Shown: positions 5,221 through 36,441 of the stretch, piece by piece
How positions within the stretch are numbered: the stretch's first letter is position 1
Layout: each line of letters begins with the position of its first letter
Assembly: GCF_001194135.2 (NCBI RefSeq)
Contig: NC_069005.1
Span: 11,383,635 to 11,421,349 of the forward strand
DNA from: Octopus bimaculoides
Taxonomy: Eukaryota
Length of the DNA stretch: 37,715 nucleotides
Reading direction: 5' to 3'
Notes under the pieces: generated by a model
Databases searched by the model: none
What the model saw: only the letters and a program-made list of their open reading frames with translations
Told to the model about the DNA's origin: nothing
Translations under genes and position numbers: made by a program

Positions 5221-5314
5221 TTATTTTTCTGGTTTGGCTTTGATCCAGGCGGTTAACCGAGGCGCGTTTTCCGAAGTGCATTTTGTTGATATCTTACCAA
5301 TATTTTCCCATAAC
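5221..5314 (-). CDS. STC: Stanniocalcin-like gene, copy A, last coding exon
   Basis: Acceptor tttgcgttgcag|G completes the phase-2 codon (CT+G = Leu). Encodes LWENIGKISTKCTSENAPRLTAWIKAKPEK-stop (94 nt) with the tenth core Cys. The paralogue at 33282-33375 has the same length and stop position. Confidence 0.88.
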
Positions 5315-6428
5315 CTGCAACGCAAAGTAAAAAAAGAAATATTGGTGTCTTTTTGAATCACACACAAGCGAATTAAAACTTTTCTGTTGTTCTTGTGGTT
5401 CTTTAGTACCGACTCAGTACAAACACTAACAGACCTGACATTATGATCGGAGACATTTCAAACATGGCTGCCATGTCTAATTTTCAGCATTAATGAATCT
5501 CTAGATTACATTATTGTATGTGTTTAATTTTTATGACTTGTGTGTATATTTATGTGTATATATGTGTGTATGTGTATATATGCGTGTAAGTATGTATATG
5601 TGTGCGTGCGCGCATATATATATATATATGTATATATATANNNNNNNNNNNNNNNNNNNNNNNNNNNNNNNNNNNNNNNNNNNNNNNNNNNNNNNNNNNN
5701 NNNNNNNNNNNNNNNNNNNNNNNNNNNNNNNNNNNNNNNNNNNNNNNNNNNNNNNNNNNNNNNNNNNNNNNNNNNNNNNNNNNNNNNNNNNNNNNNNNNN
5801 NNNNNNNNNNNNNNNNNNNNNNNNNNNNNNNNNNNNNNNNNNNNNNNNNNNNNNNNNNNNNNNNNNNNNNNNNNNNNNNNNNNNNNNNNNNNNNNNNNNN
5901 NNNNNNNNNNNNNNNNNNNNNNNNNNNNNNNNNNNNNNNNNNNNNNNNNNNNNNNNNNNNNNNNNNNNNNNNNNNNNNNNNNNNNNNNNNNNNNNNNNNN
6001 NNNNNNNNNNNNNNNNNNNNNNNNNNNNNNNNNNNNNNNNNNNNNNNNNNNNNNNNNNNNNNNNNNNNNNNNNNNNNNNNNNNNNNNNNNNNNNNNNNNN
6101 NNNNNNNNNNNNNNNNNNNNNNNNNNNNNNNNNNNNNNNNNNNNNNNNNNNNNNNNNNNNNNNNNNNNNNNNNNNNNNNNNNNNNNNNNNNNNNNNNNNN
6201 NNNNNNNNNNNNNNNNNNNNNNNNNNNNNNNNNNNNNNNNNNNNNNNNNNNNNNNNNNNNNNNNNNNNNNNNNNNNNNNNNNNNNNNNNNNNNNNNNNNN
6301 NNNNNNNNNNNNNNNNNNNNNNNNNNNNNNNNNNNNNNNNNNNNNNNNNNNNNNNNNNNNNNNNNNNNNNNNNNNNNNNNNNNNNNNNNNNNNNNNNNNN
6401 NNNNNNNNNNNNNNNNNNNNNNNNNNNN

Positions 6429-6481
<53 letters not shown>

Positions 6482-6968
6482 CACATAAGTATATATGAGT
6501 ATGTATATGCATAGATATAAGTGTTTGTCTATGTATATAAGTGTGTGTATATATGTGTATATATGTAAGTGTATGTGTATGTGTGTCTGTGTAACTCCCT
6601 GTTTTTTTTCTGTAATATCTCATTTGCTCTTCCTTCCAGCACTCCAGCTGACAACACAGCCCTTCACTCACCCCGTATCTCTCTCACACGCACACGCACA
6701 CACGTACACACGTCAATTTCAGATACACGTACATACATCTTTCACTTTCTTCTATCTTTCACGCTTTCCTCTCACTTCAAAGCAAATTTCTCCTTTTCAC
6801 TTTCTCCTCTTTTTCAATTTCTGCTCTCTTCAAGCAGAAAATATTTTTACGGAAAATATTTTTACGGAAATTAACGATCAGTCATAAGATCCCGTATGAT
6901 AGACCATATGATCGAGTTGACAACTTTGATGCTTCAACCGAAAGAATGCCAAAAAATAACTTCTTTTG

Positions 6969-7014
<46 letters not shown>

Positions 7015-7682
7015 NNNNNNNNNNNNNNNNNNNNNNNNNNNNNNNNNNNNNNNNNNNNNNNNNNNNNNNNNNNNNNNNNNNNNNNNNNNNNNNNNNNNNN
7101 NNNNNNNNNNNNNNNNNNNNNNNNNNNNNNNNNNNNNNNNNNNNNNNNNNNNNNNNNNNNNNNNNNNNNNNNNNNNNNNNNNNNNNNNNNNNNNNNNNNN
7201 NNNNNNNNNNNNNNNNNNNNNNNNNNNNNNNNNNNNNNNNNNNNNNNNNNNNNNNNNNNNNNNNNNNNNNNNNNNNNNNNNNNNNNNNNNNNNNNNNNNN
7301 NNNNNNNNNNNNNNNNNNNNNNNNNNNNNNNNNNNNNNNNNNNNNNNNNNNNNNNNNNNNNNNNNNNNNNNNNNNNNNNNNNNNNNNNNNNNNNNNNNNN
7401 NNNNNNNNNNNNNNNNNNNNNNNNNNNNNNNNNNNNNNNNNNNNNNNNNNNNNNNNNNNNNNNNNNNNNNNNNNNNNNNNNNNNNNNNNNNNNNNNNNNN
7501 NNNNNNNNNNNNNNNNNNNNNNNNNNNNNNNNNNNNNNNNNNNNNNNNNNNNNNNNNNNNNNNNNNNNNNNNNNNNNNNNNNNNNNNNNNNNNNNNNNNN
7601 NNNNNNNNNNNNNNNNNNNNNNNNNNNNNNNNNNNNNNNNNNNNNNNNNNNNNNNNNNNNNNNNNNNNNNNNNNNNNNNNNN

Positions 7683-8357
7683 TCACTTGTAGCCTTTTGG
7701 AAAGTGGGGAAGTTTCTTCAGAAATAAGGTCGTTTACCTGTTGATTCTAGCATGTCGGGTTTTCTGGTGGTAATCTGGAATTTTTGCGCCTGCTATTTCA
7801 GTACAATTCTATACTTGCGTGAAACATTAGACGAAAGTGCAACATTGGAAAGTTTTAGCTTTCTGAAAGCGGGTAGGTGATGTGTAGGCGAGTGGGGTAT
7901 AGAATATTTCTTAGAGAAAAAATAAACATAAAAGAAATATATATATATTTCCTAGATTCGTAGTCTCTGTGTTTTTCTACGTGGTTAAAAAAAAATCGTA
8001 AAGAAATTACAAATTCAGAAATTGCGGTGAGGTCGAGGAGAAATTAAAATTTTCAAAACGTGATTTCTGGGAAAATCGTATTAACCTCCTTTTATACGAT
8101 GAAACAATACATAGAGCAGAAAGCACTTTCGTGTTAACCCATTTCTCTTTTAAAACTCACTTTACTTTTAAACCCACTTCATTTTTAAACAAACATTTTA
8201 AAACCCACTTCACTTTTAAACAAGAAATAACTTCCACTAAGCCAGTAATCCAGTGCACTATATATCGGCTGTGCCGATTATGCCCATAGGAAAGGAACGA
8301 ATAATGCAATGTGCTTGTAGGTCATAACATCCGGGCAACGCCGGAATGGATGGCTAG
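7683..8357 (+). mobile_element. Probable non-autonomous Helitron; 3' terminus at 8357
   Basis: Hairpin tccgg-gcaacg-ccgga (8330-8345) 8 nt upstream of CTAG (8354-8357), followed by T. This is the canonical Helitron 3' end. The 5' boundary is uncertain because of the gap. Confidence 0.5.
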
Positions 8358-8559
8358 TATATAAGATGGCCATTCAAAACTATAAAACGACTATGTGGAA
8401 TAATGGTTCCTCACAAACATAACAAACAAAAATAACAACAACAACAACAACAACAACAACAACGGCAGCTGCAACAACAGCAGGAACAACGGCGATGACG
8501 TTAACAACAATAAAAACTACGACAGCAACGATGGAAACAAATGTACGTGAAATACTCAC

Positions 8560-8786
8560 AGTCTGTAATGTTGTGATTTTGATTTCTCAATGGGCCGTTG
8601 AAAAATCTTCCACAGTCCCTGGCGATTTTCCCAGCCGACTTCACAAAAATCATTAGCCAGGTAACAAGTTTGTTGTATGGCCAGGGTGCTTTCCAAGACA
8701 GAATTACAATCGAGTGTGTCAGATTTGTAGAATTCAGTCAGTAACTTCATGAAACATCCAATTATTGAATTGATCCAAATTTTCCC
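8560..8786 (-). CDS. STC: Stanniocalcin-like gene, copy A, internal coding exon (equivalent to STC exon 3)
   Basis: Acceptor ttttacag|GGG, donor CT|gtgagta, 227 nt, phase 0 in and phase 2 out. Encodes GKIWINSIIGCFMKLLTEFYKSDTLDCNSVLESTLAIQQTCYLANDFCEVGWENRQGLWKIFQRPIEKSKSQHYRL. Cys spacing 16/14/7 is identical to STC1 C98-C114-C128-C135. The paralogous exon at 36215-36441 has the same length. Confidence 0.92.
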
Positions 8787-9914
8787 CTGTAAAATAAGCA
8801 GTTTTTCAATGAAAAATGAAATCAGTTTATAAGAGGGATTTTTGTGTTTTTCTTTTCTGACGATTAATAATGACTATTATGGAAACTAATCATATATATG
8901 CTAATCATAATTGTGTTATTTAAAAGCAGAAGTGAAACATATATGAATGAGACATTAATTAGAAAAAGAGAGATAGAAATGGAAAACTCAGGAAAGCAAA
9001 TGAATCTTCACACATACACACGCGCGCGCACACACATATACACACATATCACAGATAAATTAGCAATCAGTTGTAATATTAGCTAGAACCTAGTTATCTC
9101 ATTGATCAGGACACCGCGAAAGAGTCAAATCCCACACGTACGTACACGTTCATACATATACATACATTTATGCGAATATGTATATACACACACGTAGGTT
9201 ATTGATCTAATGCAAGTTATAGATCCAACCTAAGGATGGTTCAAGGGTTTATATGAAAGAAAACAAGTGGAGTTTAAAAATTCACAACATCTGTTTCAGT
9301 AGTATTTCGAATTGGTTACTACAATTATATCACGAAAAAATCCCGCAATCATCAGGTGATTTTAAACATAGGCAGGAAGAGAAAATTTAAACGGACCCAC
9401 TTTGGTAACCCATTAGCAATGCGGAATTGAAGAACCGTTGAAAGTTTATATGACTGTCAGCGATTGACTTACGGCAGAGAACAGAGGCAACAAAATTTTA
9501 AAGATCGCTCTCATAATTAATTACACAGATAATGAGGACTGACGTAGGAAATAAAGGATAAGAAGAAGAGAGAGAAAGGAAAAGAAAGAATATTATAGGG
9601 GAGAAAAGGGGAAAGAATTGTCTTTGCAAACTCACCACAGACAACCAAAGTTCATGTTGGCGTCTAAAGCTCTGTACCATTGAAGTGATTACCGCAACTG
9701 CAGCTTACGTTATCACACACATCAACATAGATTTATACAAATTTAAATAACGTATTACCTCATACACGCGAATATACGCACCTAAAAATCCATAAACACG
9801 TAAGTACACATACTTGTAGAGACAACCACACCCACACATCAACACACACATACACAAACATACACGCATGCACACACATATATACATACACTCAGATATG
9901 CATACAAACACGCT

Positions 9915-9979
<65 letters not shown>

Positions 9980-9994
9980 GGTCATATGCTCTAA

Positions 9995-10385
9995 AATGTT
10001 GTTGTTGGCACTCCGTCGCTTACGACGTCGAGGGTTACAGTTGATCCGATCAACGGAACAGCCTGCTCGTGAAATTAACGTGCAAGTGGCTGAGCACTCC
10101 ACAGACACGTGTACCCCTAACGTAGTTCTCGGGGATATTCAGCTTGACACAGTGTGACAAGGCTGACCCTTTGAATTACAGGCACAACAGAAACAGGAAG
10201 TAAGAGTGAGAGAAAGTTGTGGTGAAAGTGTATAGCAGGGTTCGCCACCATCCCCTGCCGGAGCCTCGTGGAGCTTCAGGTGTTTTCGCTCAGTAAACAC
10301 TCACAGCGCCCGGTCTGGGAATCGAAACCGCGATCCTATGACCGCGAGTCCGCTGCCCTAACCACTGGGCCATTGCGCCTGCACA
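9995..10385 (-). mobile_element. tRNA-derived SINE, near full length
   Basis: Minus-strand head ggcgcaatggcccagtggttagggcagcggactc...ggtttcgattccc (A and B boxes). Body (gttgatccgatcaacggaacagcc) shared with 15330-15617. Confidence 0.8.
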
Positions 10386-10699
10386 TGCCCTAAAATAAGC
10401 ACACTCTAAAGGACTGAGCAGTTAATTATATGTCCGGTGCTAAAGTAACCATATAGCGTTAAGCTTCATGGACGGCTCGTCAGACACAAATGGCAGCTGG
10501 TATATACCCCTCTTCAAACAGAAAAGAGAAATCCGTTACGGTCAGTTAGTTTGTTAACAAAAGTTAAAATACCGTTCGAGACTTGTCCGAGTTATGTCAC
10601 TGAGACAAGTCCAGATTGCAAATTTTATGATCTTAAGTGGCGAAAGAGGTATCTCCGCCCTTAGGCTGTTTCAAGTTTGCGGGGGTACTTTTCGGCTCA

Positions 10700-11010
10700 A
10701 ATCAACGAATGGGGAATGCCACGCTCGTAGTATGTAGCGTTTGAAATGGAGGCATGGGTTATAAATCTCGTTTCTTGAATTTAATACAGACGCTGAATCT
10801 TGAAAGAACATTGCTCGTTTGCAATGCAAAGCTTTATCGTCCGCTTCCGTTTATGTATGGTCCTTACTGCTCTATGATCCTCCATTTAATTCCGTATAGA
10901 ATTCCATTATCCTTAAGGTGCCTTATACGGCTAGCCAGGGACGTGACGTATCGTCTTTCCAGGACCCTGAAAGGGGACTTGTGGTTGTACAGGCACCACT
11001 TACAGGCAAT
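10700..11010 (-). mobile_element. Penelope-like element fragment (GIY-YIG endonuclease C-terminal part)
   Basis: Peptides YNHKSPFRVLERRYVTSLASRIRHLKDNGILYGIKWRIIEQ and LNSRNEIYNPCLHFKRYIL resemble the NHK.SF...TSL...I..LK......I.W.I and LN.R.E...C.H motifs of PLE ORF ends. Confidence 0.75.
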
Positions 11011-12997
11011 TCCAGCTGACCTAATATATCTACAAACATAGTTGGTGTTTTGTGTTCGCATTCCTTGTATATCTTCTGATGTTTCCGGGCCTGGGGTTGA
11101 TGTTGCCGCCGCTGTTATTACGGGACGTGGGTCTGGCGAAATCACTCAATTTCCTTTTTATCGAATTTGCTATAAGCCCGGGGTTATAATAGAAGACAAA
11201 AGGCCAAGTAGAGATATAGAGCCATGTGGTTGCAACGCGAGTTTCTTAACCACATGATTATGAATGCGATTGTAGACAATACAAGAATTCACTTACACTG
11301 ATACAACAGATATATCGCTCACTGCAAATATACAAACTATGTTATATGCTACAAGAACCATTTGCACTCAGGCTACATTAAATTAACTCCCAAACCGAAC
11401 AAAAAATATATTTTATCAAACGGTTACCTCGTAATTAGAACAGAATGAAAAGCTTCATCAAATCAGAAAATCACAGAATGTACTCCAAACAACTAAAATA
11501 ATATGCAAATTTCATTGTAAGCATAATGTTTGTAAACTACACGAGAAACTGTTACTTGGGATAAACAAGTACGACACTTTCACGTCGATTGACTATGTAT
11601 TTACAGCAAGGACTCACCGCAGATTGAATATAATACTGTACCAGAAAGAAAATTAGAAATAAAAACATTAGCTAACAGTGCTATAATTTTATATAGAATT
11701 CCTCAAGAAAATAAGAAAAATAACCATGACAGAAACTATATTAATAGAAAAATACAAATCAAAAGTCAGTACATACATATATATCATACATAAATTATGA
11801 AATCTACCAGAACTAAAGCCTTGTATAATTTCAAATTCAGCATGGACGATTTTATAAGTTATTACAATATTTCCATAATCTTAGTGACTGTAGTGCAAAT
11901 TATTAATATAATTTCAGTTGACTTAAGGAATTGATTAAGTTTTTAAAGGATACAGACTTAGGAATTTAGGAGCGTTGTAGTTCCTGTCGAAACGTAAAGA
12001 ATTAATAAGCAAGTATAAAAAGCCTTTTCAAAAGATCGAATTGAAATGGAAGCAGAAGACTATATGTATATATATNNNNNNNNNNNNNNNNNNNNNNNNN
12101 NNNNNNNNNNNNNNNNNNNNNNNNNNNNNNNNNNNNNNNNNNNNNNNNNNNNNNNNNNNNNNNNNNNNNNNNNNNNNNNNNNNNNNNNNNNNNNNNNNNN
12201 NNNNNNNNNNNNNNNNNNNNNNNNNNNNNNNNNNNNNNNNNNNNNNNNNNNNNNNNNNNNNNNNNNNNNNNNNNNNNNNNNNNNNNNNNNNNNNNNNNNN
12301 NNNNNNNNNNNNNNNNNNNNNNNNNNNNNNNNNNNNNNNNNNNNNNNNNNNNNNNNNNNNNNNNNNNNNNNNNNNNNNNNNNNNNNNNNNNNNNNNNNNN
12401 NNNNNNNNNNNNNNNNNNNNNNNNNNNNNNNNNNNNNNNNNNNNNNNNNNNNNNNNNNNNNNNNNNNNNNNNNNNNNNNNNATACATACAAGTAAGCAAG
12501 TGTATACAAAGCAAGGTTGAAAAATAATACTCGTATAGCAAAGCTAGAATAATATTCTACTTATTAAAGCCGAAAACTCTTCACAAGGTGTTGTGTCTCC
12601 CGTTACCGTTTGACGGACGGATGTGATTATATTAAAAGAAAAAATTGTGTGGGTACTGGTAATTTTAGTATACATATATAAACAAAGACAAATGGTCGCC
12701 AACTGTGGACATACAAACAAACTAATATCAATAAACGTACAAAATAAGCGAGACAGTTAGTGAATGTATGAGGGACAGAGAAGAAAACAAACAAGAATAT
12801 GGGCATACAAACGAACTGATATAAACAAAAGTACAAAATAAGGCCTTAGAGTCAGACAGGCGACGAAAATAGTCAAGGCTAGGAGAATATCCTAAAAGAT
12901 TTAACAGAGAGACAGCAAATGGTGAAAAGAGCGGGAGACGAGAAAATGCGACTGCTTGGTAAGTCAGCCTGTCATGTGTGCATACACACAGACAAAT

Positions 12998-13028
<31 letters not shown>

Positions 13029-13998
13029 ACCACACATATACACACATATATATTTTAAAAAACCTTATATATGTTTCACTGCCAACACAATCAAAGTTAT
13101 TTACAATACTCATCGTTAAAAACTGCTAGAATATATATGTGTGTGTGTGTGTATCTGTGTGTGAGTGTGTGTGAATGTGTGCGTTTGTGTGTGTGTATAC
13201 AAGTATACGTATATATGTGTGTATATGCGCGCGCGTGCAGTTGTATGATTAATCCATTTCTATTGTATGAATGTGATACACGTGGTTGAAAGTATCCAAA
13301 CCCTGGATTTGTTATGAGGATGGAGACGGGACAAGTGATTTATTTGCGGTTGAATTTATAAAAATAATTATCCATAAGATAGAAACTCTATAACTAGCGA
13401 TATCATTTATAAATGTACCGTTGGAAACCATACCATTAAAATAGCTTACATATGTATGACTGTTAATAGATTCAGAATTAGTTACGATACTCATCGTTAT
13501 TCGTTCAAAACTCTGCTAGAAGTAATATGTCTACAATTTCGCACTACTTTTGGCAGTTGAAAATTTGCAGCTTTCTTTGTAAACTTCATTGAAAGAATTT
13601 AGCTAAGGAGAAACTATAGCGGGAATCAAAATTCATACTATTTATGCACAATGACTCCATTTTAAATAGAAATTCAGGGCTTGCACAAATAAAATAATTT
13701 ATAGCTGTATCCATATGGATAGTCATTAGTTGTCAACATCCTGTACTAAACAGTTAGTGGACGACTGTGCATCTTTTTGAAGTGGTGACTGTGGCATATA
13801 AAAACTTTACATGTATAGATTTAGATACATATAATATATCGAAGCAAATATATACGAAATACAAGAAAATGAAGGTCCTCGATGTACTCACCAATAACCC
13901 AATATTATATTAAAAGATTTTGTACAATTATTTTCCGAGAAACTATCTCTCATTTTCCTCCTCTCTCTCACTCTTCCTTCTCTCTCTCTCTCTCTCTC

Positions 13999-14083
<85 letters not shown>

Positions 14084-14279
14084 ACATGCACACTCACACA
14101 CATATATATATACATACACACACTACACACTCTCTCAAACACACACCATGCATTGGTAATGCATTGGGGAATAGTCAACAGAGTTAGAAAGTAGAAATAC
14201 TAAATTTGTAGTAGAGAGAAAATTAGCTGACGTGGAGGAGTGAAAGCCAGCTAAATATTAAAAAAGCGTTACGTGTATC

Positions 14280-14870
14280 TTGATGTCGCTGGGTGTCAAA
14301 ATGCCGACCTCACGACTGCTGCTCAAAGCTCTCTGAACACTGTGAAGGTTGTAAGACGTGACATGGACAGCTTCAACGGCGGCTACAAAGTTGTGAACTG
14401 TGACCAACGGAAGGGACACAGCAGACTTTCTGACTGCGTTCCTACGCCGAGATACTGCCCCACATCTCCAAACAGGGACTGAGGTTCAATTCAGACGGCT
14501 ATGTAAAGCAGCTGGAGAATGTGGCAAATCCCTGGCTGGAGAGGGTTGCTAGCAGATGACCATACATGTTACGCAAAGATTCAACTCCTTGCCATACCTT
14601 CGGAAAGAGTTAGAATTGGTTGTCGGAAAAATTCTGCGTCTTTACCAGCCCTAATTTCTGGGCCTCCTAATTCTCTTCGATTATAAGCTCATGTTTGGAC
14701 GCGGTTGAGACAGACGCCAAACGATCTGCGTACAACACCAAGGCCTCGCCAAGTTCAAGAAGGTGTTCGAAGATCTTCTCAGAGACAGTGAGGAACGCAT
14801 GTGCCAGGTTCGGCACCCGTCTTAAGGCCTTAGTAAAAGGCGAGGGAGGCTATTTTGAGTAAAGTGTTAT
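14280..14870 (+). mobile_element. Degenerate Tc1/mariner-superfamily (maT/DD37D-like) transposase fragment
   Basis: GLRFNSDGYVKQLENVANPWLERVASR*PYMLRKDSTPCHT ... KGEGGYFE* matches the catalytic-domain C-terminal half; contains stops and frameshifts. Confidence 0.75.
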
Positions 14871-15058
14871 CTCCCAGCAATATTCTAGTTGATATTTTTG
14901 GATTTTTTAAAAGGTAATTTATTTTTGGATGAGATATTTTGTCTTTCACTTTTATACAAACTGTCAAAATTTAGCCCAAACATCCTGTACAAACTTTATT
15001 CACCCTTTCTCATTCTATTTCTAACGCGCAATTCTTTCCACTTAGAAGTTTCACTTAC

Positions 15059-15219
15059 TACATTATTCAAAGTTTTTGCCACTCTCAAAGCTCTTCTACA
15101 TTGCCTATACGAGGTTTCCTCTTTCTTTTTTTCTGGATGACAAGGGAACCTCTCATCCAAACATTTGTAAAACTTGCAGTTGACATTTTCACTATGTTTG
15201 AGACATTTCGGGGTAACAT
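15059..15219 (-). CDS. STC: Stanniocalcin-like gene, copy A, internal coding exon (equivalent to vertebrate STC exon 2); 5'-partial gene
   Basis: Acceptor ttttcag|AT, donor GTA|gtaagtg, 161 nt, phase 1 in and phase 0 out. Encodes xVTPKCLKHSENVNCKFYKCLDERFPCHPEKKKEETSYRQCRRALRVAKTLNNV. Five Cys spaced 9/5/7/14 versus human STC1 C45-C54-C59-C65-C74 (9/5/6/9, recalled sequence). Splices in frame to 8786-8560. Confidence 0.88.
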
Positions 15220-15329
15220 CTGAAAAAGAAAAAGAAAAGAAATACAAAGGTATTAAACAGGGTGTTTCTGATTCTTTTTTGTTATTAATAATAAGACTCC
15301 CTCCCCTAAGAAAGCAAGACAAGCAGCTA

Positions 15330-15617
15330 GCATTCCGTCACTTGCTCCCACGAGGGTGCCAGTTGATCCGATCAACGGAACAGCCATTCTACAGACGTGT
15401 GTACCCTTAATGTACTTCACAGGGAGATTTAGCATGACACAGAATGTGGTAAGGCTGGCCCTTCGAAATACAGACACTACTACTTTTTTGCTCACTGAGT
15501 GGATTGAAAGAACATGAAATAAAGTGTCTTGTTCAAGGACACGATGTGTCGCCGGGAATTGAACTCATGACCTTACGATTGTGAGCCGAGAACCTTAACC
15601 ACTAAGCCACGCACCTG
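15330..15617 (-). mobile_element. tRNA-derived SINE
   Basis: Minus-strand tggcttagtggttaagg (A box) and gagttcaattccc (B box); body shared with 9995-10385. Confidence 0.75.
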
Positions 15618-15824
15618 AAACAGATAAAAGATAAATAAAAAATGAAATTTTGGCGGTGGGGTCCAATCGATTATTTTATTACTAAGAGGGGAAAACAATA
15701 GGAAGTGAGGTTGAAAGTGGATGATAGAACATTATATTAACGAGAGGAAATAAATATACATCAGTCTATATTTTGGAATTAAAGGTAAGAAATTGTTCTC
15801 AAATATTGATACTTATTTTTTCTA

Positions 15825-15950
15825 CTCGGAAAGGATGAAAGGCAAAGTCGACCTCGGCAGAATTTGAAATCAGAAAGTAAAGAAGGACGAAACGCGGCTT
15901 AGCATTTTGCCCGTCTTGAGAACGATTCTGTCAGTTCACCGCCTTTACAA
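15825..15950 (-). mobile_element. tRNA-derived SINE fragment
   Basis: Reverse complement of the 2089/2322 SINE head (gtcgacctcggcagaatttgaaatcagaa...aacgattctgtcagttcaccgcc). Confidence 0.7.
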
Positions 15951-15963
15951 GCATATATAGAGA

Positions 15964-17179
15964 CAGGGTTTGGACAAAATAATGGAAACACCTTACAATT
16001 TCAAACAAATTAATTTTAATATGGGAATAAGACCGCCTTTGGAAGTAATTACAGCTTGAATTCTCCAAGGTATGGACTCATACAAAGTTTGAATTGTTTC
16101 CAAAGTAATGTTTGTCCATTCTTCAGCTAAAACAGTCTCCAGGTCTTGTAGTGATGATTATGGAGGATATCGACTCCTTAATTGTTTTTCTAAAATACAC
16201 CATAAATGTTCAATAATACTGAGATCTGGGGTCTGTGGTGGCCAGATAAGATGTTCAACTTCACTAGAATGTTCCTCGTGCCATTCAATAACAACTTTAG
16301 CTGTGTAAATTGGTGCATTTTTATACTGGAAGGTTGCGTTTCCCTCCGGAAACAGTTCCGCAACCATAGGATTAATTTGATCAGATAAAATGCTTAAACT
16401 GTCTTGACTATTAATACTGCCATGAAGGGAAACTATTGAGCCGGTGGATTTCCAAGATATAGCTCCCACCAACTCCAGATCATCACAGATCCCCTCCATG
16501 TTTAACAGTTAGAAGAAAGCAGTCTGGGTCAAATGCCTCTTTTCGCTGTCTCCACGCGTATATTCGGCTGGAGGTAGGAAATAAGGTAAAGGATGACTTG
16601 TCCAAGAAAGTAACACTCTTCCACTGCTCTAGGGACCAATTTTGTAGGTTCTTACTCCACTCTAAATGCTTTGCAACGTTTGTTTTTGAATGTAGTGGTT
16701 TTCTGTTTGCAGCCCTCGCGTGAAATCCGGCTTTGTGCGGCTCTCGGTGAACAGTTTTTATGGAAAATGGGTTCTCAAGGTAGTCATTAAGCTCAGCAGT
16801 AATTTGGGGAGCTGTACTGTTGTGATACTTTCTAACAATTCGCGTAATAGTCCGGAGTTTTGTTTCAACGAGGAGGTTTTTCCCTCTTTCTCAAAAGCTG
16901 TCATTATTTTCCAGACAGTACTTCTTGATACACCAAACATTTCGGCTGTTTTCGTTACGCTAGCGCCTGCCATACGAGCACCAACAATTTGACCTCTTTG
17001 AAAGTCCGATAGATCTGTCATGATATCTGAAAAGAAACAGCGATTTTAGCAAACCATATCAAGCAACACTAATAATAAATCAAAAGCATAAAAATAAACA
17101 AGCTTTAGACGGTTTTATAGATATTTCCAAATCATGGTGCTATGATGCTAGGTGTTTCCATCATTTTGTCCAACCCCTG
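15964..17179 (-). mobile_element. Tc1-like DNA transposon with both terminal inverted repeats; transposase inactivated
   Basis: Left TIR cagggtttggacaaaataatggaaacacc (15964-15992) and right TIR ggtgtttccatcattttgtccaacccctg (17151-17179), two mismatches, followed by TA. Transposase pieces: MTDLSDFQRGQIVGARMAGASVTKTAEMFGVSRSTV, WKSVTFLDKSSFTLFPTSSRIYAWRQ, FQYKNAP and WPPQTPDLSIIEHLW. Confidence 0.92.
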
Positions 17180-20790: not shown

Positions 20791-20799
20791 CGCAAGAAA

Positions 20800-22556: not shown

Positions 22557-22594
<38 letters not shown>

Positions 22595-28229: not shown

Positions 28230-30195
28230 CAAGACCTTAAGTTCTGGTGGATGGTGAACAAAGCAAGATCATCTCGAACCTGACAGTAGCTTCAATATTC
28301 TTAATATGTTTTTCAAAGCCCTTGGAAACTGCTCGTAATGCTCCAATTACCACCAGTATCACCATTACTTTCCTCATGCCCCATAAATTTCCTATCTCAT
28401 CCCGCAGTGGCTGGTATTTCTCAATCTTTTCTGTTTCCCTACATTTCACTCTCGAATCACCAGATATTGCAACATCTATTATCTTTATTTCTTTTTCTGC
28501 TTTATGGATGAGTACGATATCTGGTCGTCTCGCCTCTATGACTTGGTCGCACTGCGTGTTAAAATCCCAGAGTATTTTATAATGTTCATTTTCTCTTAGT
28601 CCCTTTGGCTTGTGTTCATACCATTGTTCAACTCTCTCTAGGTTTGCTTTACCGCACAACAGCTAGTGGACATATCTAGCCAAGTTGTCGTGTCTCCTTT
28701 CATATTCGCGTTGTGCAAGCTTACAGCACTTACTAACAATATGGCTTATACTTTCTCCCTTCTCAGAGCACATCCTACACTGTGGCGAGTCAGTGCTTTT
28801 ATCAATGTGATATTTGGAGCAGTTTGTTCTGATAGCTTGTTCTTGAGCGCTGCACACTAATTCCCCAGTAGGCCCTTTTACGTATCCTTTCTGCAGCCAT
28901 TGCCAGGTTCTATTTCAATCAATCTCATCTTTATTCTTCAAGAACTGACTGTGCATTTTCTTGTCCTGCCAAATTTTCTTCATCTGCTGTCTCTGGTCTT
29001 ACTTAAATTGCGTTGGATCTACAGTTTCGTTCACTTTTAAAGTTCCCTGCATTTTCACTGATTCAATCATTTCTTCTTTACTCCCATTGATATACCAAGC
29101 CAGGTTATTCTCCTGTTCCCTTACACAACCTTCACAACACACTAGTCCCCGTATTCTTCCTCTTTACATACAATCTTGATACACCATTCTTGGGGTGTAG
29201 TTCCTTGTTCATTGTCATTAGCATACGTATTCTCCAGACTCTTGTAGTTCATGCATCTTCCAAAATACTATTCCTGCCCCATATCTCATCAAAGCAGCAG
29301 CCCACGTATTAATTGCTCTAATCTTATAGCGGCCATTTAGCTTCGATTGGCGGGCAATCCGAATTCTCCTCAAATATTCTTTCTTGTTCATGTCTTTCAT
29401 CTTGTGTTCATTCACCTTATCTTTTTCAATGACACCCAGGTACTTATATCTTTCCTCTCCGACTTCCTTTATAGTTTCACCATCTTCAAGCTTGATCCCA
29501 TGGCTTTTACTGATTTTACTCCTTTTGAGAATCATTACACCACATTTCTTGACCCTAAATTCCATGCCAATATCTTTGCTAATCATCTGTACAGTTGCCG
29601 ACAAACACTCAGTTTCTCCCTCAGTCTTAGCGAATTGCTTTAGGTCATCCACAAACCACAGGTTGTTTACTTTCACCCTACCTAGTATGTACCCCACACG
29701 CATCTTTCTTAAAACGTTCGTTAGTGGTAGTATGCAGACAACAAATAGGAGAGGCGTGAGACTGTCCTCTTGAAAGATTCCTCTTTTGATACTTACCTCT
29801 CCCAGCTTATTTCCCTATGCTGTGAGTTCAGTTCGCCACGTTGTCATTGAGTTTTGTATTAACTTCAGGATATCATGTAAGACCTTCAGTATTTTAAGGC
29901 ATTCAATAATGCACGAGTGTGGGACCATGTCATATGTTTTTCTGTAGTCCACCCATGCCATCGCCAAATTTTTGCGTCTCTTCTTGCAGTCAACCAGGAT
30001 AGTCTTATCGATTAGTAATTGATCCTTAATTCCTCTGTTCTTACGTCTACACCTTTTTTGTTCCACTGGTAGTAGATCGTTCTCATCTAGGTACTTACAG
30101 ATGCTGTTTGATATGATGGCCATCATCAGTTTCCACATAAGTGGCAAACAAGAAATTGATCGGAAATTTCCACTGCTGCCTACGCCAGGACAAGA
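28230..30195 (-). mobile_element. R4/Dong-like non-LTR retrotransposon ORF (RT, CCHC zinc knuckle, REL endonuclease), degenerate and 5'-truncated
   Basis: [13 protein letters not shown]; [14 protein letters not shown]; LWFVDDLK (YxDD-like); YKYLGV; CRMCSEKGESISHIVSKC...RRHD; LWDFNTQCDQVIEARRPDIV...IIDVAIS...EKIEKY. Confidence 0.9.
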
Positions 30196-30299
30196 ATCAC
30201 AAACATCACCAGCACCGGAAAAACTACCAGCAACAACACCAAAGACATTAACCACCGTAGGATCAAGCAAGGATAGTTCTCCCACCCGACTCACACCAA

Positions 30300-31075: not shown

Positions 31076-31678
31076 CTGTCAGACGGACCCACCCGAAAAG
31101 CGCGCAAAGCCGCCACCACCACCACCATCAAAAACAACAATAATAACAACTACAAGTTCGAAATCAACTGCAGCAGCAGCAGAAGCAGCAGCATTTGCCA
31201 GCTTAAGAATCGTTGTTATAATAAAACACCTGCAAGCATTGTAATTAGAGTTACTATTGTAATTATGATGGATGTAAGGGGAATAAATCTAAATTCTTTG
31301 AGCACGATGTAGCATGAATCGAGCTATCATCGACAAACCAAACTCACGAAATTAGTCTTTCCAGCAATGACCATCCTGTCGTATTTTCAGACATATTATA
31401 TCTGGGACTACACCGTCTAATGAATCTTTTCTTTTTCGATTTTTTCTACCTTTCCTTCTATTCTTTTCTTTCTTTCCTTCTATTCTTTTCTTTCTTTCTT
31501 TCTTTATTTCTTTCTTTCTTTCTTTTTTTCTTTCTTTCTTTCGGAAGTATTAAAGCGTCGGATGGATTGCTTAGTTTCCAATTATACTTTCTAATTATTT
31601 GCCCTCATAAAAGTCCAAGTTATCTTTGATTTTTGCCATTTTGGGGTTCATAAATAAAATGACCAGTCCTGGGGGGTG

Positions 31679-31792
31679 ATTCTTCTTCTTCTTCTTCTTC
31701 TTCTTCTTCTTCTTCTTCTTCTTCTTCTTCTTCTTCTTCTTCTTCTCCTCCTCCTCCTCCTCTTCCTCCTCCTCCTCCTCCTCTTCCTCCTC
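31679..31792. repeat. (CTT)n-(CTC)n microsatellite, paralogous to 3510-3555
   Basis: Directly visible; both tracts follow gtcctgggg(gg)tgatt. Confidence 0.95.
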
Positions 31793-31844
31793 CCAGTCCC
31801 CTTGTGCGCTTCCGTCTCTCACCCAGAATAGAAAGGACACAGTG

Positions 31845-32047
31845 GTGCAGGTCTATATGTAAGAGATGAGGAATTATGTACATTTCTTACAATATTTACA
31901 TTTTGACGGATATTTGTCCTCATATTGTTTGTTGTTAACACAACATTTTGGCTAATATACCCTCCACCCTTCATCAGGTGTCTTGGGGAAATTTCTAACC
32001 TGTGTTCTCATTCTTAAGGTATTTCTCGATGTTGTCGTTGTTGTTAT

Positions 32048-32086
<39 letters not shown>

Positions 32087-32365
32087 AACTACTACTACTA
32101 CACCATATGCCCACGGGCATATGGTGTAGTGGTTAAGAGCGCAGGCTACTAACCCCAAGATTCTGAGTTCGATTCCAGGCAGTGAACTGAATAATAACAA
32201 CAACAACAACAACAACAATAATAATAATAACAACAACATCGAAAAGTACCTTAAGAGTGAGAACCCAGGTTCGAAATTTCCCCAGGACACCTGATGAAGG
32301 CTGGACAACAAACAAGATGAGAACAAATATCCATCAAATGTATTTAATGTGTATAGTCCTGTATA
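31845..32365. mobile_element. Head-to-head inverted dimer of a tRNA-derived SINE (fold-back), present only in duplication unit B
   Basis: Plus copy from 32115 has A box tggtgtagtggttaa and B box gagttcgattcc. The left arm (about 31895-32035) is the reverse complement of about 32233-32345. Centre is a perfect 16-bp palindrome (32097-32130). Absent at the matching unit A position (about 3620-3640). Confidence 0.75.
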
Positions 32366-33268
32366 TCAAAAGAAATGTACTAGCTATGGATGGGACGTCT
32401 GTTTTGCATAATTCCACTGTTAAATAACAACGCAGACAATAATGGCAATAAAGACAAAACGGGAATTTGCGAGAAATAGTGTCAAATTTTATTTGTAGCA
32501 AAGACAAAAAACATCATTCTTTTGGTATATAATTGATTTTGAATTGCATAGAGACATTGGGAAATTTCTGACGTGTGTATGTATGTATATATATGTATAT
32601 ATATATATATATGTCTGCATATATATATNNNNNNNNNNNNNNNNNNNNNNNNNNNNNNNNNNNNNNNNNNNNNNNNNNNNNNNNNNNNNNNNNNNNNNNN
32701 NNNNNNNNNNNNNNNNNNNNNNNNNNNNNNNNNNNNNNNNNNNNNNNNNNNNNNNNNNNNNNNNNNNNNNNNNNNNNNNNNNNNNNNNNNNNNNNNNNNN
32801 NNNNNNNNNNNNNNNNNNNNNNNNNNNNNNNNNNNNNNNNNNNNNNNNNNNNNNNNNNNNNNNNNNNNNNNNNNNNNNNNNNNNNNNNNNNNNNNNNNNN
32901 NNNNNNNNNNNNNNNNNNNNNNNNNNNNNNNNNNNNNNNNNNNNNNNNNNNNNNNNNNNNNNNNNNNNNNNNNNNNNNNNNNNNNNNNNNTATATATATA
33001 TATATATATTCACGTACACACACAGGGCATGTGTGTCTGTGTATCTGGGTGGGTGTGTATATGGTGAAAAGCACTAATGAAACAGAAGCTACATGGTATA
33101 TTATTATTATTATTATTATTATCGTTGTTGCTGTTGCTATTGGTGTTGGTGGGGGTAGTGGTGCCGCCACACGTCTCAAAATCTAAAAACCAAAATATAA
33201 ACAATATTAAACAATCTTTGAGCCAACAGTTATCCCTGAAATGTAGATAACTTATTGAATACATTTCG

Positions 33269-33274
33269 TTTATT
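33269..33274 (-). promoter_or_regulatory. Candidate polyadenylation signal AATAAA, copy B
   Basis: Same position relative to the stop codon as in copy A. Confidence 0.45.
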
Positions 33275-33281
33275 TCGTCAG

Positions 33282-33375
33282 TTAATGTTCTGCTTTGGAG
33301 TTGATCCAGGAGGTTAATTCAGGGGCATTTTTCGTTGTGCATTTTGAAGACATCATTCCGAGATTTTTCCATAAC
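33282..33375 (-). CDS. STC: Stanniocalcin-like gene, copy B, last coding exon
   Basis: Acceptor tttgcgttgtag|G, 94 nt. Encodes LWKNLGMMSSKCTTKNAPELTSWINSKAEH-stop; 17/30 aa identical to copy A. Confidence 0.88.
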
Positions 33376-35269
33376 CTACAACGCAAAGGATAAATGTAAT
33401 ATTAGTGTCTTTTTGAACCACATAGAAGCGAATTATAACTTTTTTTCTGTTCTTGTTCCTATTTAGTCCCAACTCAGTACAAACACTAACAGACCTGACC
33501 TATAATCGGAGACATTTCAAATATGGCTGCCATGTCTAATTCTCAGCAATAATGAATCTCCAGACTACGTTGTTGTATGTAGTTTATTTTAATGACTTGT
33601 TTGAACGCTATTAGGAACTTTTGGGTATGAGGTTTTTCGTGTGTGTACTCTTCTTTAAATGTTGTAGCTATGCACAATAAAAGTAAGCATGTAGTACAAG
33701 TTGTACTAGTACTAGTACTTGTATACCTAGGTGGATTAAAATACATCTAACATTTACACTACATGTATATCCCGTCATCCCCACATGAGTCAGGATAAAC
33801 CCCATTGTAACTATAATTAACTCTATATGGTTACAAAGTTACAATCTTTACAGCTTAACAACCTGATATAATTAAAATTATGATACAACATATGGTTATT
33901 TACGTTTCCTACGTTATACTCTTATCGTATTATGAATACTTTCTGCTTATATCCAGAATTGATAATAATCTCAACCTTACTTGTAGTGTCTATGAATGGT
34001 TTACACACTAGTTTTGCAATACACAGTTATCCCACTTCAACTATAGTCTACAAGCCTAAATATACTTTAACTTAGAACTGTACACATTAACCCTTGCATT
34101 TCGCACTTTATTCGTAAGCTTGAAATTAGTACGCAGACCTACCCACAACGTAATAACACTTAATAAACGCTATTCTAGTATAACACTTAGCTACGAATCT
34201 TAGTACGATAATATGCTATCAGACTACTCTTCTATGATTGAATCCTTTAGCGTATGTTTATCATTTATTTACTTTTCAACTAATCGCTTCTCCCTCCACG
34301 ACTCTCGTGCAGATAGTTACTGATATACCTATATAAAACGCCACTCACATATCCGTATTTCCCATAGCCCATCCATTACTAAGGACCCGCTTGAATATTC
34401 ATGTCTTAAATATTCTTATATTTATCTCTGTTCATGTTTTATTTTATTCTTTTGTTTTACTGGTCTTGTAATTTATTGATAGTCCTAACGGATCTGAACA
34501 GCGCCATTGTTTTTAAATGTTAGCTCACCAATTAGGTTGTAGGATTGACTTTGACCTTACTCCACTACGCCTAGGGGTATTGGCATTAGGTTTCAGTCGA
34601 TAAGTAACAAATATTAACATTGCACTAAGGTTATACTCAGTTTTTCTTTTATTAATGTACTTATGTATTAATTTACTCCTAACAGGTTCAATGTAAGTTA
34701 TTTTTGCCAACTCCTTTCATAATGCTATAGTTATTAAATAGCCGTTAGCCTCTGACTTCTGACCACTGTAGCATGGACCATACTATTAAACCCATCACAT
34801 AGCATACTACCTTCACTATCTCCCTCAGTATAATGGGAACACGATGTAAACCGCAGCCTACGGATATATCCCCTGAGAGTGACTTTATTTACATACCACA
34901 GGATGGAATACCATAGATTATAACACCTTAATATGAACCTCTTACTTTTCCTTACCGTGTCTATTACATTACATAACACTATTTTACATATTTTACTCTA
35001 TCTTATCATGTTTTACCCTACTCAATTAATCTAACAGAATTTCCCACATGTTAGTTTCCTAACATTTGTGCTCTCTGAAGAGGCTCAACCGTTATCCAAT
35101 GTCTGTCCAATGATTGGTCACCACTGTATATCACTGACGTGATGAGGATGACTTGGAAGATTCTGAGGCCTCATGGTAGAAACGGACGTAAGGGATTTGT
35201 ATCTGTACATTCATCTATTATTATTCATTCATCTCTTTCTCTCTTTCTCTCTCTTTCTCTCTCTCTCTA

Positions 35270-35322
<53 letters not shown>

Positions 35323-35362
35323 NNNNNNNNNNNNNNNNNNNNNNNNNNNNNNNNNNNNNNNN

Positions 35363-35399
<37 letters not shown>

Positions 35400-36022
35400 G
35401 TTTACATATTTATTGGCTGATCTCATTCGTTTACTTGTACCACTTAAACACATGTTGGTTATAATATCATAAATAAATATAATGGAATGTTTACTGGCTG
35501 ATGTTTGTCTATGTTATATCCTCTCCATTTTCTTATTTGCCTTTATATATAAGTGTTTGTCTGTAACTATGTATATAAGTGTGTGTATATATGTATGTGT
35601 GTGTGTAGGTATGTCTGTGTAACTCCCTGTTTTCTTTTTCTGTAATATCTCATTTGCTCACCCTTCCAGTTCTCCAGCTATCTAAACTACTCTTGATTTC
35701 TGACTAAATAGAAACGCTTCCTCCAAATGTAAGGTTTGTATTATTTAATTTCTCCGTCTGAAGAATTTCTACTAGGACATTCCATACGTGTCTATCTAAC
35801 ATGTAAAACTCTGTAATGGTTAATAAATAATACGATTACATTTTCCTTTTTCCTGTGTTGTTATACAATAACTCTGCAACCAATATTTCCAGAATTTTCA
35901 ACTTTTATCGTATACTTTGCCTCTGTACAACAACGACAGCAAATACGTATTGGATTGTAATAATGGAATAAGCAGAGGTGCTTCAAGAGGAAGCACCTGA
36001 ATACCTATCCTACTTAACTACA

Positions 36023-36025
<3 letters not shown>

Positions 36026-36112
<87 letters not shown>
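36026..36112. repeat. (CT)n microsatellite; others at about 13980-14000, 35230-35322 and 37230-37282
   Basis: Directly visible. Confidence 0.95.
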
Positions 36113-36118
<6 letters not shown>

Positions 36119-36214
36119 ATTTGTTTATTTGTTTATACACACGACGATGACGATAACAACAACAATAAGAATTACGACAGTAACAACGGAAACAAAAGTA
36201 CGTGAAATACTTAC

Positions 36215-36441
36215 ATCATATAATAATCTGATTTTGTCTCGTTCATGGGCCGCTGGAAAATTTTCCACAGTGCCTCGCGATTATCCCAGCCGACTCCGCA
36301 AAAATCATTAGACGTGTAACAATGCTGTTGTATATTCTTGGCTTTTCCGAAGACAGAATTACAATCGAGTGTTTCAGCTTTGTATAGTTCAGTCATTTCC
36401 TTCATGAAACATGCAACTAGTGAATTGATCCAGATTTTCCC
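36215..36441 (-). CDS. STC: Stanniocalcin-like gene, copy B, internal coding exon (equivalent to STC exon 3)
   Basis: Acceptor tttacag|GGG, donor AT|gtaagta, 227 nt. Encodes GKIWINSLVACFMKEMTELYKAETLDCNSVFGKAKNIQQHCYTSNDFCGVGWDNREALWKIFQRPMNETKSDYYMM. 47/76 aa identical to copy A, no indels or stops. Confidence 0.92.

Follow-up and report, generated by a model that had tools for sequence, protein, structure and literature searches.

The question raised by this locus is what kind of gene is represented by its spliced, cysteine-rich reading frames, and to what use an octopus may have put it. The window, i.e. the whole stretch of 37,715 nucleotides that was analyzed, lies at about 11.384-11.421 Mb on chromosome CM046625.1 of Octopus bimaculoides, and the cephalopod origin proposed in the initial annotation was supported by 100% matches to this record. 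The coordinates of the features found in the window are collected in Table 1.

The three minus-strand exons of copy 1 (161, 227 and 94 nt), which had been proposed to be joined through GT-AG sites into a 159-codon frame with ten cysteines, were confirmed on the sequence in all these respects. The exons are bordered by cag at the 5' side and by gtaagt or gtgagt at the 3' side, with the last exon ending instead in TAA, and when read from the third base they yield 159 codons plus the stop; the first two bases of the 161-nt exon belong to a codon that begins in the preceding exon, the intervening intron being of phase 1. The product of exon 2, (D)VTPKCLKHSENVNCKFYKCLDERFPCHPEKKKEETSYRQCRRALRVAKTLNNV, includes Cys 1-5 and has a phase-1 acceptor upstream, and this exon shows 87% identity to its O. 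sinensis counterpart (LOC115224535 exon 2), while exon 3 is collinear with positions 23498-23724 of the O. sinensis locus L001. The cysteines are located at positions 5, 14, 19, 26, 40, 64, 80, 94, 101 and 141 of the frame, which is uninterrupted by any assembly gap and aligns without internal indels to the O. sinensis protein, the annotated orthologue of copy 1 being 85% identical. The AATAAA hexamer located downstream from the stop is a candidate polyadenylation signal, with another one at equal offset in copy 2.

Table 1. Location of the stanniocalcin-like genes, assembly gaps, duplicated units and other elements in the window.
Feature	Position	Strand	Length	Remarks
Copy 1 exon 2	15059..15219	-	161 nt	Preceded by ttttcag, followed by gtaagt
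Copy 1 exon 3	8560..8786	-	227 nt	GKIWINS...SQHYR, Cys 6-9
Copy 1 exon 4, coding part	5221..5314	-	94 nt, including TAA stop (5223-5221)	Cys 10; acceptor gttgcag
AATAAA hexamer, copy 1	5208..5213	-		Begins 8 nt past the stop; sequence match only
5' part of copy 1 intron 1	21045..21600	-	556 nt	Gap-edge segment
Copy 1 duplicated unit	3010..21600	-		Gene body and about 2.2 kb of 3' flank; blastn to copy 2 unit
Copy 2 (NCBI LOC106879340) exon 3	36215..36441	-	227 nt	Preceded by tttacag, followed by gtaagt
Copy 2 exon 4, coding part	33282..33375	-	94 nt, including TAA stop	
AATAAA hexamer, copy 2	33274-33269	-		Sequence match
Copy 2 duplicated unit, part within window	31131..37715	-		Exon 2 and exon 1 region beyond base 37715
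Gaps	5641-6428 and 7015-7682			Copy 1 intron between 227- and 94-nt exons; collinearity with L001
Gap	12076-12481			Copy 1 intron between 161- and 227-nt exons; collinearity with L001
Gap	20034-20511			Copy 1 intron 1; collinearity with L001
Gap	21601-22465	-		Expected site of the first exon of copy 1 (putative signal peptide; the O. sinensis exon has about 106 nt)
Gap	23402-23892			Intergenic; outside the O. sinensis collinearity comparison
Tc1/mariner-type transposase relic (DDE_3)	16158..16499	-		In copy 1 intron 1; PF13358 37.2 bits, cut-off 28.6
Retroelement reverse-transcriptase fragments	29218..30294	-		Spacer between copies; two ORFs, RVT_1 19 and 28.7 bits, below cut-off 29.6

The 159-aa product stood as an open frame but not as a full protein, because a putative signal-peptide exon of about 35 aa is hidden in an assembly gap. 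The gap test has been carried out with the gapless O. sinensis locus L001, with which the window is collinear, in reversed orientation, at five of the six gaps flagged in it. The sequences on either side of the gap 21601-22465 (20799-21134 and 22481-22699) match L001 10909-10571 and 9646-9433, respectively; L001 exon 1 (10001-10105) lies between these two segments, and the gap is thus the expected place of exon 1 of copy 1. A tblastn search of the whole window with O. sinensis exon 1 as query gave nothing above noise. The region where exon 1 of copy 2 is expected falls in the gap 3488-4476 of locus L002. Each gene has four exons, exon 1 (putative signal peptide) and the coding exons of 161, 227 and 94 nt. 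The O. sinensis orthologues start with MWRFLAVLLMSFVLAIKG, which has a hydrophobic core, and by comparison with them both products would be secreted through the putative signal peptide encoded by exon 1. As the first exon of each gene falls in an assembly gap, copy 1 lacks a gene model in the protein databases searched and the NCBI model of copy 2 is truncated to 129 aa, which is of relevance for the annotation of this region. Transcript-derived sequences for copies 1 or 2 were not found in the protein collection, in which only the NCBI model of copy 2 is present; the Aplysia and oyster stanniocalcins do have transcript-derived entries in the same collection.

Copy 2 is located 27.7 kb from copy 1 on the same strand, so that the coordinates agree with the tandem arrangement previously proposed, and it repeats the 227- and 94-nt exons with the same borders, as had also been noticed. 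Its 161-nt exon 2 lies just beyond the window (L002 9909-10069, same chromosome record), and its product is 100% identical to the NCBI model of LOC106879340 (P0002). The tblastn comparison of both copies gave E = 4e-32, and their amino-acid identity is 59-62%.

The assignment to the stanniocalcin family was borne out by the Pfam domain, the sequence search in PDB and the fold. The Stanniocalcin domain PF03298 (cut-off 23 bits) was matched with 38.4 bits by copy 1 and 36.8 bits by copy 2 (E = 1.1e-9 for the match), and with 49-50 bits by the O. sinensis orthologues. The phmmer search against PDB revealed STC2 as the only match, with nine cysteines aligned to STC2 cysteines, and the tenth is nearly invariant in a family alignment of 20 sequences. 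The AlphaFold2 model (pLDDT 82, pTM 0.76) consists entirely of helices, and in the Foldseek search against PDB the top four matches were all human STC2 (probability 1.00, TM 0.49-0.61), with a probability of 0.06 for the next one. The ten cysteines occupy identical positions in the four genes (both copies in O. bimaculoides and O. sinensis), and the chance of keeping all of them with the differences placed randomly is about 0.005. In other stanniocalcins the ten family cysteines pair into five disulfides. Each octopus product would have about 195 aa, with a mature part of around 160 residues modeled as an all-helical stanniocalcin fold that contains the ten family cysteines. Copies 1 and 2 are therefore almost certainly functional tandem paralogues of this family.

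To our knowledge, the vertebrate pappalysins are the sole established molecular targets of stanniocalcins. The ten-cysteine pattern, the all-helical fold, the signal-peptide precursor (putative in octopus) and the GKxWI...C and Q..CY....C motifs are shared with vertebrate STC1/STC2. However, identity to STC2 is only about 15-20% (STC2 structures 8a7d, 7y5q and 8hgh), and the mature octopus proteins have about 160 residues, compared to about 220-280 in STC1/STC2, and lack their C-terminal region. The STC2 dimerization cysteine C211 has no octopus counterpart, as the proteins contain only ten cysteines and end 18 residues past Cys10. Copy 1 has Ser75 and copy 2 has Ala75 at the site aligned to STC2 C120, which traps PAPP-A covalently through a bond to PAPP-A C732, and invertebrate stanniocalcins in general have been reported without an equivalent of this cysteine (PMC11925022). 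In the phmmer alignment, the LNR3-contacting K104 of STC2 is replaced by Asn59 (PMC9579167). The vertebrate N-glycosylation sequon between Cys3 and Cys4 was not found in either copy or in the O. sinensis genes; N-x-S/T sequons are absent from copy 1 and both O. sinensis genes, and copy 2 has a single NET at residue 120. As the dimerization cysteine, Cys120 and the vertebrate glycosylation site are all missing, these proteins are predicted to be monomeric, non-covalent extracellular binders.

The comparison of the two units by blastn revealed eleven blocks of at least 100 nt, most of them collinear and with 75-84% identity, extending through introns and 3' flank. A segmental duplication of about 18 kb gave rise to the copies, and it is older than the O. 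bimaculoides/O. sinensis split, because both have O. sinensis orthologues, which are located on one chromosome; in O. vulgaris the gene model is a fusion of both copies. The tandem array originally described was real, but its size goes far beyond two copies, since nine loci with stanniocalcin-like exons, corresponding to at least 8 genes, were found in a cluster of about 206 kb (11,244,108 to 11,450,461). The word-indexed protein search was lossy, with 1 match per single query and 14 with a 20-sequence profile, and copy counts were based on an exhaustive representative search and tblastn of fetched loci. In a neighbor-joining tree (without bootstrap) the cluster genes form one octopus clade, separate from the canonical stanniocalcins of cephalopods, gastropods, bivalves and chitons. 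Similar arrays across molluscs, which would have removed the lineage-specific character of the expansion, were not seen at the Aplysia and Biomphalaria loci: each has one stanniocalcin gene, and the 10 kb flanking it on each side contain no second copy. In the databases searched, in which squid and cuttlefish proteomes are perhaps thinly represented, the expansion was confined to octopuses; it is not private to O. bimaculoides, as O. sinensis has both copies.

The single-copy homologues of other molluscs (Lottia, Aplysia, Lymnaea, Biomphalaria, oyster and Mytilus) and the canonical cephalopod type (Argonauta/O. sinensis LOC115215717-like, P0008) share the Pfam family and the cysteine scaffold with the cluster genes, and the exon that extends from just before Cys1 to a point ahead of the GK/GR-x-W motif has been conserved in both octopus and gastropods. 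However, the cluster genes show only 20-38% identity to these stanniocalcins, lack the C-terminal tail of the canonical cephalopod type and are arrayed, whereas the Aplysia and Biomphalaria genes are single. Outside the cluster clade, octopods also retain a canonical stanniocalcin (the P0008 type, 222 aa), which is more conserved.

Conotoxin-type venom superfamilies combine a conserved signal region with a hypervariable, cysteine-framed mature region. The octopus cluster resembles them in its nearly constant exon 1, diverged mature part, fixed cysteines and tandem amplification; in contrast, the sequences are unrelated and typical venom peptides are much smaller than the octopus proteins. Exon 1 of the O. 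sinensis paralogues is identical at 100/106 nt and 33/35 aa (94%), compared to 56% amino-acid identity in the mature part, and this conserved 5' end may come from gene conversion rather than from selection. Amino-acid identity between paralogues is 56-60%, and the net charge of the mature region has moved from about +10 to around -3, so that copies 1 and 2 are opposite in net charge. Positive selection is not claimed, because pairwise dN/dS was nowhere above 1.

A 2026 preprint reports stanniocalcin-like "doppelganger toxins" (superfamily SF5) among the highly expressed secreted products of O. bimaculoides salivary glands, with prey-hormone mimicry as the proposed role (bioRxiv 10.64898/2026.02.02.703354). 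The idea of a venom or salivary effector, already raised in the initial annotation, is therefore plausible but no longer new. The SF5 toxins share the species and the protein family with the cluster, while a genomic cluster is not described for them in the available part of the preprint, and they could stem from another cluster member or from the canonical stanniocalcin gene. Stanniocalcin is not mentioned in the supplements of Whitelaw et al. 2020.

The best overall explanation, which we consider likely, is an octopus-specific tandem cluster of stanniocalcins that act as secreted effectors rather than as a conserved hormone. The cluster products would be secreted and then bind a target protein extracellularly as non-covalent monomers, and an array restricted to one lineage, in which the signal exon is conserved and the cysteine scaffold fixed while the surface changes fast, would be expected of effectors more than of a conserved hormone. 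Among effectors, components of saliva or venom would be the likeliest; that copies 1 and 2 in particular are salivary or venom proteins is somewhat less likely than not. The complete scenario, in which an octopod venom family originated in the 206-kb array, is rather doubtful. It would require that an ancestral stanniocalcin hormone gene was duplicated, cut to a monomeric ten-cysteine core and amplified to at least 8 fast-diverging genes with a homogenized signal-peptide exon in common, whose products, secreted in the saliva, would hijack stanniocalcin/pappalysin pathways of the prey, with the oppositely charged copies 1 and 2 perhaps directed to different prey or targets. Should venom components be among the members, as the preprint suggests for this family, the cluster would show how a hormone gene is recruited and amplified into toxins, and it could yield probes for stanniocalcin targets. 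As a fast-evolving group with the stanniocalcin fold, the cluster is also a natural set of variants on a single scaffold.

It is unlikely, although several observations would agree with it, that the cluster consists of sub-functionalized endogenous stanniocalcins with paracrine or endocrine roles, such as regulating growth, ions or phosphate in gill, kidney or skin. Stanniocalcins are ancient secreted regulators across metazoans (PMC5654410), the pairwise dN/dS of 0.42-0.57 between orthologues indicates real constraint, and a transcript or proteome link of copies 1 and 2 to salivary glands was not found in the sources searched. However, the canonical stanniocalcin maintained by octopods outside the cluster clade, the presence of so many fast-diverging and charge-reversed paralogues, which is unusual for a hormone bound to one receptor, and the salivary-gland expression described in the preprint argue against this reading. 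Much less probable is that one or both copies are decaying unprocessed pseudogenes, intact in looks only. The higher dN/dS between paralogues (0.75-0.90) and the missing or short gene models would point in this direction, but the assembly gaps at exon 1 account for these models, the frames are intact, both copies have canonical sequences at all six splice borders, 10/10 cysteines are retained in the four genes, and dN/dS between orthologues is clearly below 1. Finally, that copy 2 is an assembly artefact (uncollapsed haplotype or misplaced contig), as might be suspected in a gap-rich region with a 556-nt gap-edge piece 96% identical between copies, can practically be dismissed, and is refuted for the gene bodies though not for that segment, because identity between the copies is just 78% in coding DNA and 75-84% in introns and the gapless O. 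sinensis assembly contains a distinct orthologue of each.

The gap-edge segment itself is 96.2% identical to the matching part of copy 2, compared to 75-84% in the rest of the duplicated unit, and in O. sinensis copy 2 matches it with 89.6% identity and copy 1 lacks it. This pattern points to gene conversion, or just possibly to a scaffolding artefact at the gap edge. The intron-1 pieces of the four genes, compared by pairwise blastn, differ by an indel of about 500 nt.

Other elements were also considered in the window. The Rfam and tRNA scans across the window found no RNA genes, and an inverted repeat at 13588-14580 was unconfirmed by the repeat finder; this region is better read as a segment of about 0.5 kb inverted with respect to O. 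sinensis, adjoining a (TA)39 tract. The transposase relic located in intron 1 is not part of the copy 1 gene.

Re-reading of the splice borders and of the joined frame has reproduced the structure proposed in the initial annotation for the first stanniocalcin-like gene (copy 1), with three spliced exons on the minus strand and a 159-aa open frame containing ten cysteines. All three coding exons are preceded by a polypyrimidine tract and AG, GTAAGT or GTGAGT follows the 161- and 227-nt exons, and the 94-nt exon ends in TAA. When joined and read from the third base, they give 159 codons and a stop, the first two bases of the 161-nt exon completing a codon that a phase-1 intron interrupts; the cysteines are located at positions 5, 14, 19, 26, 40, 64, 80, 94, 101 and 141. 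A tblastn search with this product also bore out the second gene (copy 2), previously placed about 28 kb away with 227- and 94-nt exons, which was found on the same strand at 27.7 kb with borders of the same kind. The coding exon lengths (161, 227 and 94 nt) are identical in both copies, and LOC106879340 of Octopus bimaculoides matches the partial copy 2 product with 100% identity. An AATAAA hexamer is present 8 nt past the stop codon in both copies (5208-5213 and 33269-33274, minus strand); if these hexamers are used, both 3' UTRs would be unusually short.

Exons, assembly gaps and cluster loci (window coordinates unless another record is named; L001, gapless O. sinensis locus of the copy 1 orthologue; L002 and L007, pieces of the O. 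bimaculoides chromosome record CM046625.1).
Feature	Coordinates	Strand	Basis or remark
Copy 1 coding exons	15219-15059 (161 nt), 8786-8560 (227 nt), 5314-5221 (94 nt)	minus	splice borders and frame
Copy 2 exons in window	36441-36215 (227 nt), 33375-33282 (94 nt)	minus	tblastn of copy 1 product
Copy 2 161-nt exon	L002 9909-10069		just past window end; canonical borders, five Cys
Copy 2 exon 1 region	L002 3488-4476		assembly gap
Gaps, copy 1 last intron	5641-6428 and 7015-7682		L001 flanks
Gap, copy 1 middle intron	12076-12481		L001 flanks
Gap, copy 1 intron 1	20034-20511		L001 flanks
Gap	21601-22465		flanks match L001 10909-10571 and 9646-9433; L001 exon 1 (10001-10105) between
Gap, intergenic	23402-23892		
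Three copies		plus	fused by NCBI into one model, LOC106876188
LOC128250809		plus	cluster locus
Exon 1-2 duplicate	L007 1469-1576 and 9905-10063 (CM046625.1 11315737-11324331)		possible alternative 5' exons of LOC128250809
LOC128250800		minus	cluster locus
Copy 1		minus	cluster locus, no gene model found
Copy 2, LOC106879340		minus	cluster locus
LOC128250786		plus	cluster locus

Membership of both copies in the stanniocalcin family is well supported, the signal peptide being seen only in the O. sinensis orthologues, which start MWRFLAVLLMSFVLAIKG and have a hydrophobic core typical of such peptides. Both products exceeded the curated cut-off of 23 bits for Pfam Stanniocalcin PF03298 (38.4 bits for copy 1 and 36.8 bits for copy 2), and a PDB sequence search returned stanniocalcin-2 (STC2) only, with nine cysteines aligning to STC2 cysteines. 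The AlphaFold2 prediction for the 159-aa copy 1 product, made from an alignment of 15 sequences, showed eight helices (mean pLDDT 82, pTM 0.76). Its top four Foldseek matches in the PDB were all STC2 chains (probability 1.00, TM 0.49-0.61; fifth match 0.06), so the identity initially given to these genes agreed with both the Pfam and the structural comparison, in which STC2 chains alone matched significantly. Relatives retrieved with the family profile (the gastropods Lymnaea and Physella, and also Mytilus, Lottia and oyster) are named stanniocalcin or stanniocalcin-like in their source, and in Biomphalaria and Aplysia stanniocalcin an exon runs from just before Cys1 to just before GK/GR-x-W, with boundaries as in the octopus genes.

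The segment 23893-37715 is 100% identical to CM046625.1 (assembly GCA_001194135.2), where the window occupies about 11,383,635-11,421,349; the N runs are also present in this chromosome-level record. Copy 1 shares 85% identity with LOC115224535 of O. sinensis (199 aa, four exons), and positions 57-22699 are collinear with L001 at about 85% nucleotide identity, exons and introns alike. Five of the six flagged gaps have flanks matching L001 on both sides, with order and orientation kept. The signal-peptide exon (exon 1) of copy 1 was not found in the window by tblastn because, judging from the L001 alignment, it appears to be hidden in the gap 21601-22465. No internal indels were seen when the 159-codon frame, which is unaffected by gaps, was aligned with the O. 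sinensis protein. Microsatellites ((TA)n, (CA)n, (ATAC)n, (TC)n) immediately adjoin at least four of the assembly gaps, for example at 4784-4874, 6970-7014, 23242-23394 and 35232-35322, and ORF translations revealed simple TA/CA-type repeats at further gap edges. Microsatellites at the edges probably caused these N runs, and the exon 1 gaps of both copies probably resulted from near-identity of the 5' ends together with flanking microsatellites.

Copy 1 (21600 down to 3010) and copy 2 (L002 4546 to 22753) share mostly collinear blocks with 75-84% identity, which span the introns and extend about 2.2 kb into the 3' flank and so define a segmentally duplicated unit of about 18 kb. Their coding sequences are 78% identical in nucleotides and 60% in amino acids, with Nei-Gojobori dN/dS values of 0.75-0.90 between paralogues and 0.42 (copy 1) and 0.57 (copy 2) between orthologues. 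All ten cysteines are kept in the four genes (both copies in both species), which would occur by chance with a probability of about 0.005 if 63 of 156 positions differed at random. The net charge contrasts between the copies (K+R/D+E of 28/18 in copy 1 and 20/23 in copy 2).

The O. sinensis exon 1 copies have 100 of 106 nt and 33 of 35 residues in common, and identity at the beginning of intron 1 reaches 95.7% between the paralogues of this species. The corresponding 556 nt beside the exon 1 gaps of O. bimaculoides (21045-21600 and L002 4546-5102) are 96.2% identical between copies, versus about 80% elsewhere; the copy 1 segment is 89.6% identical to O. sinensis copy 2 and was absent from O. 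sinensis copy 1. Gene conversion at the 5' end is suggested by this pattern; alternatively, the segment may have a complicated history that involves an indel of about 500 nt. A stretch of intron 2 of about 0.5 kb (13588-14116), beside (TA)39 at 14003-14080, is reversed relative to L001 14917-15448 within collinear surroundings. Its orientation is common to both O. bimaculoides copies, and no inverted repeat was found there by a repeat finder; it may have arisen by micro-inversion between the species or by an error of local assembly.

When 1.84 billion representative proteins were searched exhaustively with the profile, 136 matched at E ≤ 1e-3. Eight of the best 11 were Octopus proteins, several of them encoded on the same O. 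bimaculoides chromosome. When the loci were fetched and exons mapped by tblastn, nine loci with stanniocalcin-like exons were located between 11,244,108 and 11,450,461 (about 206 kb). The tandem array initially described stands as to its same-strand neighbours, but it is larger and older than had been noted. The exon 1-2 duplicate at LOC128250809 could be either an alternative 5' end or part of a further gene with its 3' exons in gaps (36% of the locus is N); NCBI isoform X2 of this gene (P0013) begins inside the duplicated exon 2. The last exon of LOC128250786 has an extra, unspliced-looking duplicate about 400 nt downstream (L006, the piece around this gene, 16044-16145; CM046625.1 11450869-11450970).

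Orthologues of both window copies are located on one O. sinensis chromosome (LOC115224535 and LOC118767950), and an O. vulgaris model fuses copy 2 exon 2 to copy 1. A neighbour-joining tree of 51 family members, calculated without bootstrap support, placed all cluster genes in one clade apart from the canonical cephalopod type (Argonauta P0008, 222 aa), gastropods, bivalves, chitons and an annelid, and within it the copy 2 pair of O. bimaculoides and O. sinensis was sister to the copy 1 pair. Aplysia and Biomphalaria have one stanniocalcin gene each; its neighbours are unrelated, and the 10 kb on each side contain no second copy. Two loci each were seen in a chiton and the oyster, and therefore small duplications also occur outside octopus. 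No array comparable to the octopus cluster was found in the databases searched, in which squid and cuttlefish may be poorly represented; with this coverage, the lineage-specific expansion initially proposed was upheld. The NCBI model of the O. sinensis copy 2 orthologue (L003, its CM016883.1 locus, 10001-54916) has a first intron of 45 kb with no stanniocalcin-like exons inside, the matching distance in O. bimaculoides being about 6 kb with uncertain gap lengths; this may reflect a large insertion or an exon 1 assigned to the wrong place.

Compared with vertebrate STC1 and STC2, the mature octopus proteins are short, with only 18 residues beyond Cys10, and are therefore without both the segment and the cysteine (STC2 C211) responsible for vertebrate homodimer formation (PMC9579167). 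The residue aligned with STC2 C120, which binds PAPP-A C732 covalently, is Ser in copy 1 and Ala in copy 2, and K104, which contacts the PAPP-A LNR3 module, is Asn. Copy 1 has no N-glycosylation sequon, and the single one of copy 2 is not homologous to the vertebrate site. According to Kjeldsen and Oxvig, invertebrate stanniocalcins are generally without C120, and pappalysin inhibition by them is considered unlikely (PMC11925022). Both proteins would function extracellularly, as monomers that bind non-covalently.

Copies 1 and 2 are intact, constrained and duplicated genes for secreted-type proteins with the stanniocalcin fold, within a cluster that is octopus-specific and fast-diverging. The conserved signal exon, fixed disulfide scaffold, variable surface and tandem amplification are effector-like features that would be more in keeping with exported effectors than with a conserved hormone, especially since a canonical stanniocalcin gene has been kept in addition. 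Stanniocalcin (superfamily SF5) is listed, in the accessible text of a bioRxiv preprint of February 2026 (10.64898/2026.02.02.703354), among "doppelganger toxins", highly expressed secreted proteins of the posterior salivary gland of O. bimaculoides and Hapalochlaena maculosa. A link between these proteins and copies 1 and 2 is possible but tentative. The protein collection contained no transcript-derived entries for either copy, although the Aplysia and oyster homologues are represented by such entries; this argues weakly against very high expression, the octopus RNA-seq coverage of the collection being uncertain. The main alternative to exported effectors, that these are endogenous, sub-functionalised signalling proteins, is rather unlikely. 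Pseudogenes are very improbable with such intact, constrained frames, and an assembly artefact is hardly credible.

The stanniocalcin family is already known, and stanniocalcin-like salivary toxins of O. bimaculoides have already been proposed in the accessible preprint text. In NCBI, the cluster genes carry no annotation beyond "uncharacterized protein". No description of the genomic cluster or its extent, of the duplication shared with O. sinensis or of the homogenised signal exon was found in the accessible text of the stanniocalcin-octopus literature. The cluster is a solid finding, useful for venom and hormone evolution, with no major surprise.

Remains of mobile elements were also noticed. 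A 113-aa ORF in intron 1 of copy 1 (16158-16499, minus strand) carries a DDE_3 transposase domain (37.2 bits, cut-off 28.6) and represents a Tc1/mariner-type transposon relic. In the spacer between the copies (28237-30294, minus strand), three consecutive ORFs, two of which match RVT_1 below the cut-off (19 and 28.7 bits), belong to a degraded retroelement.
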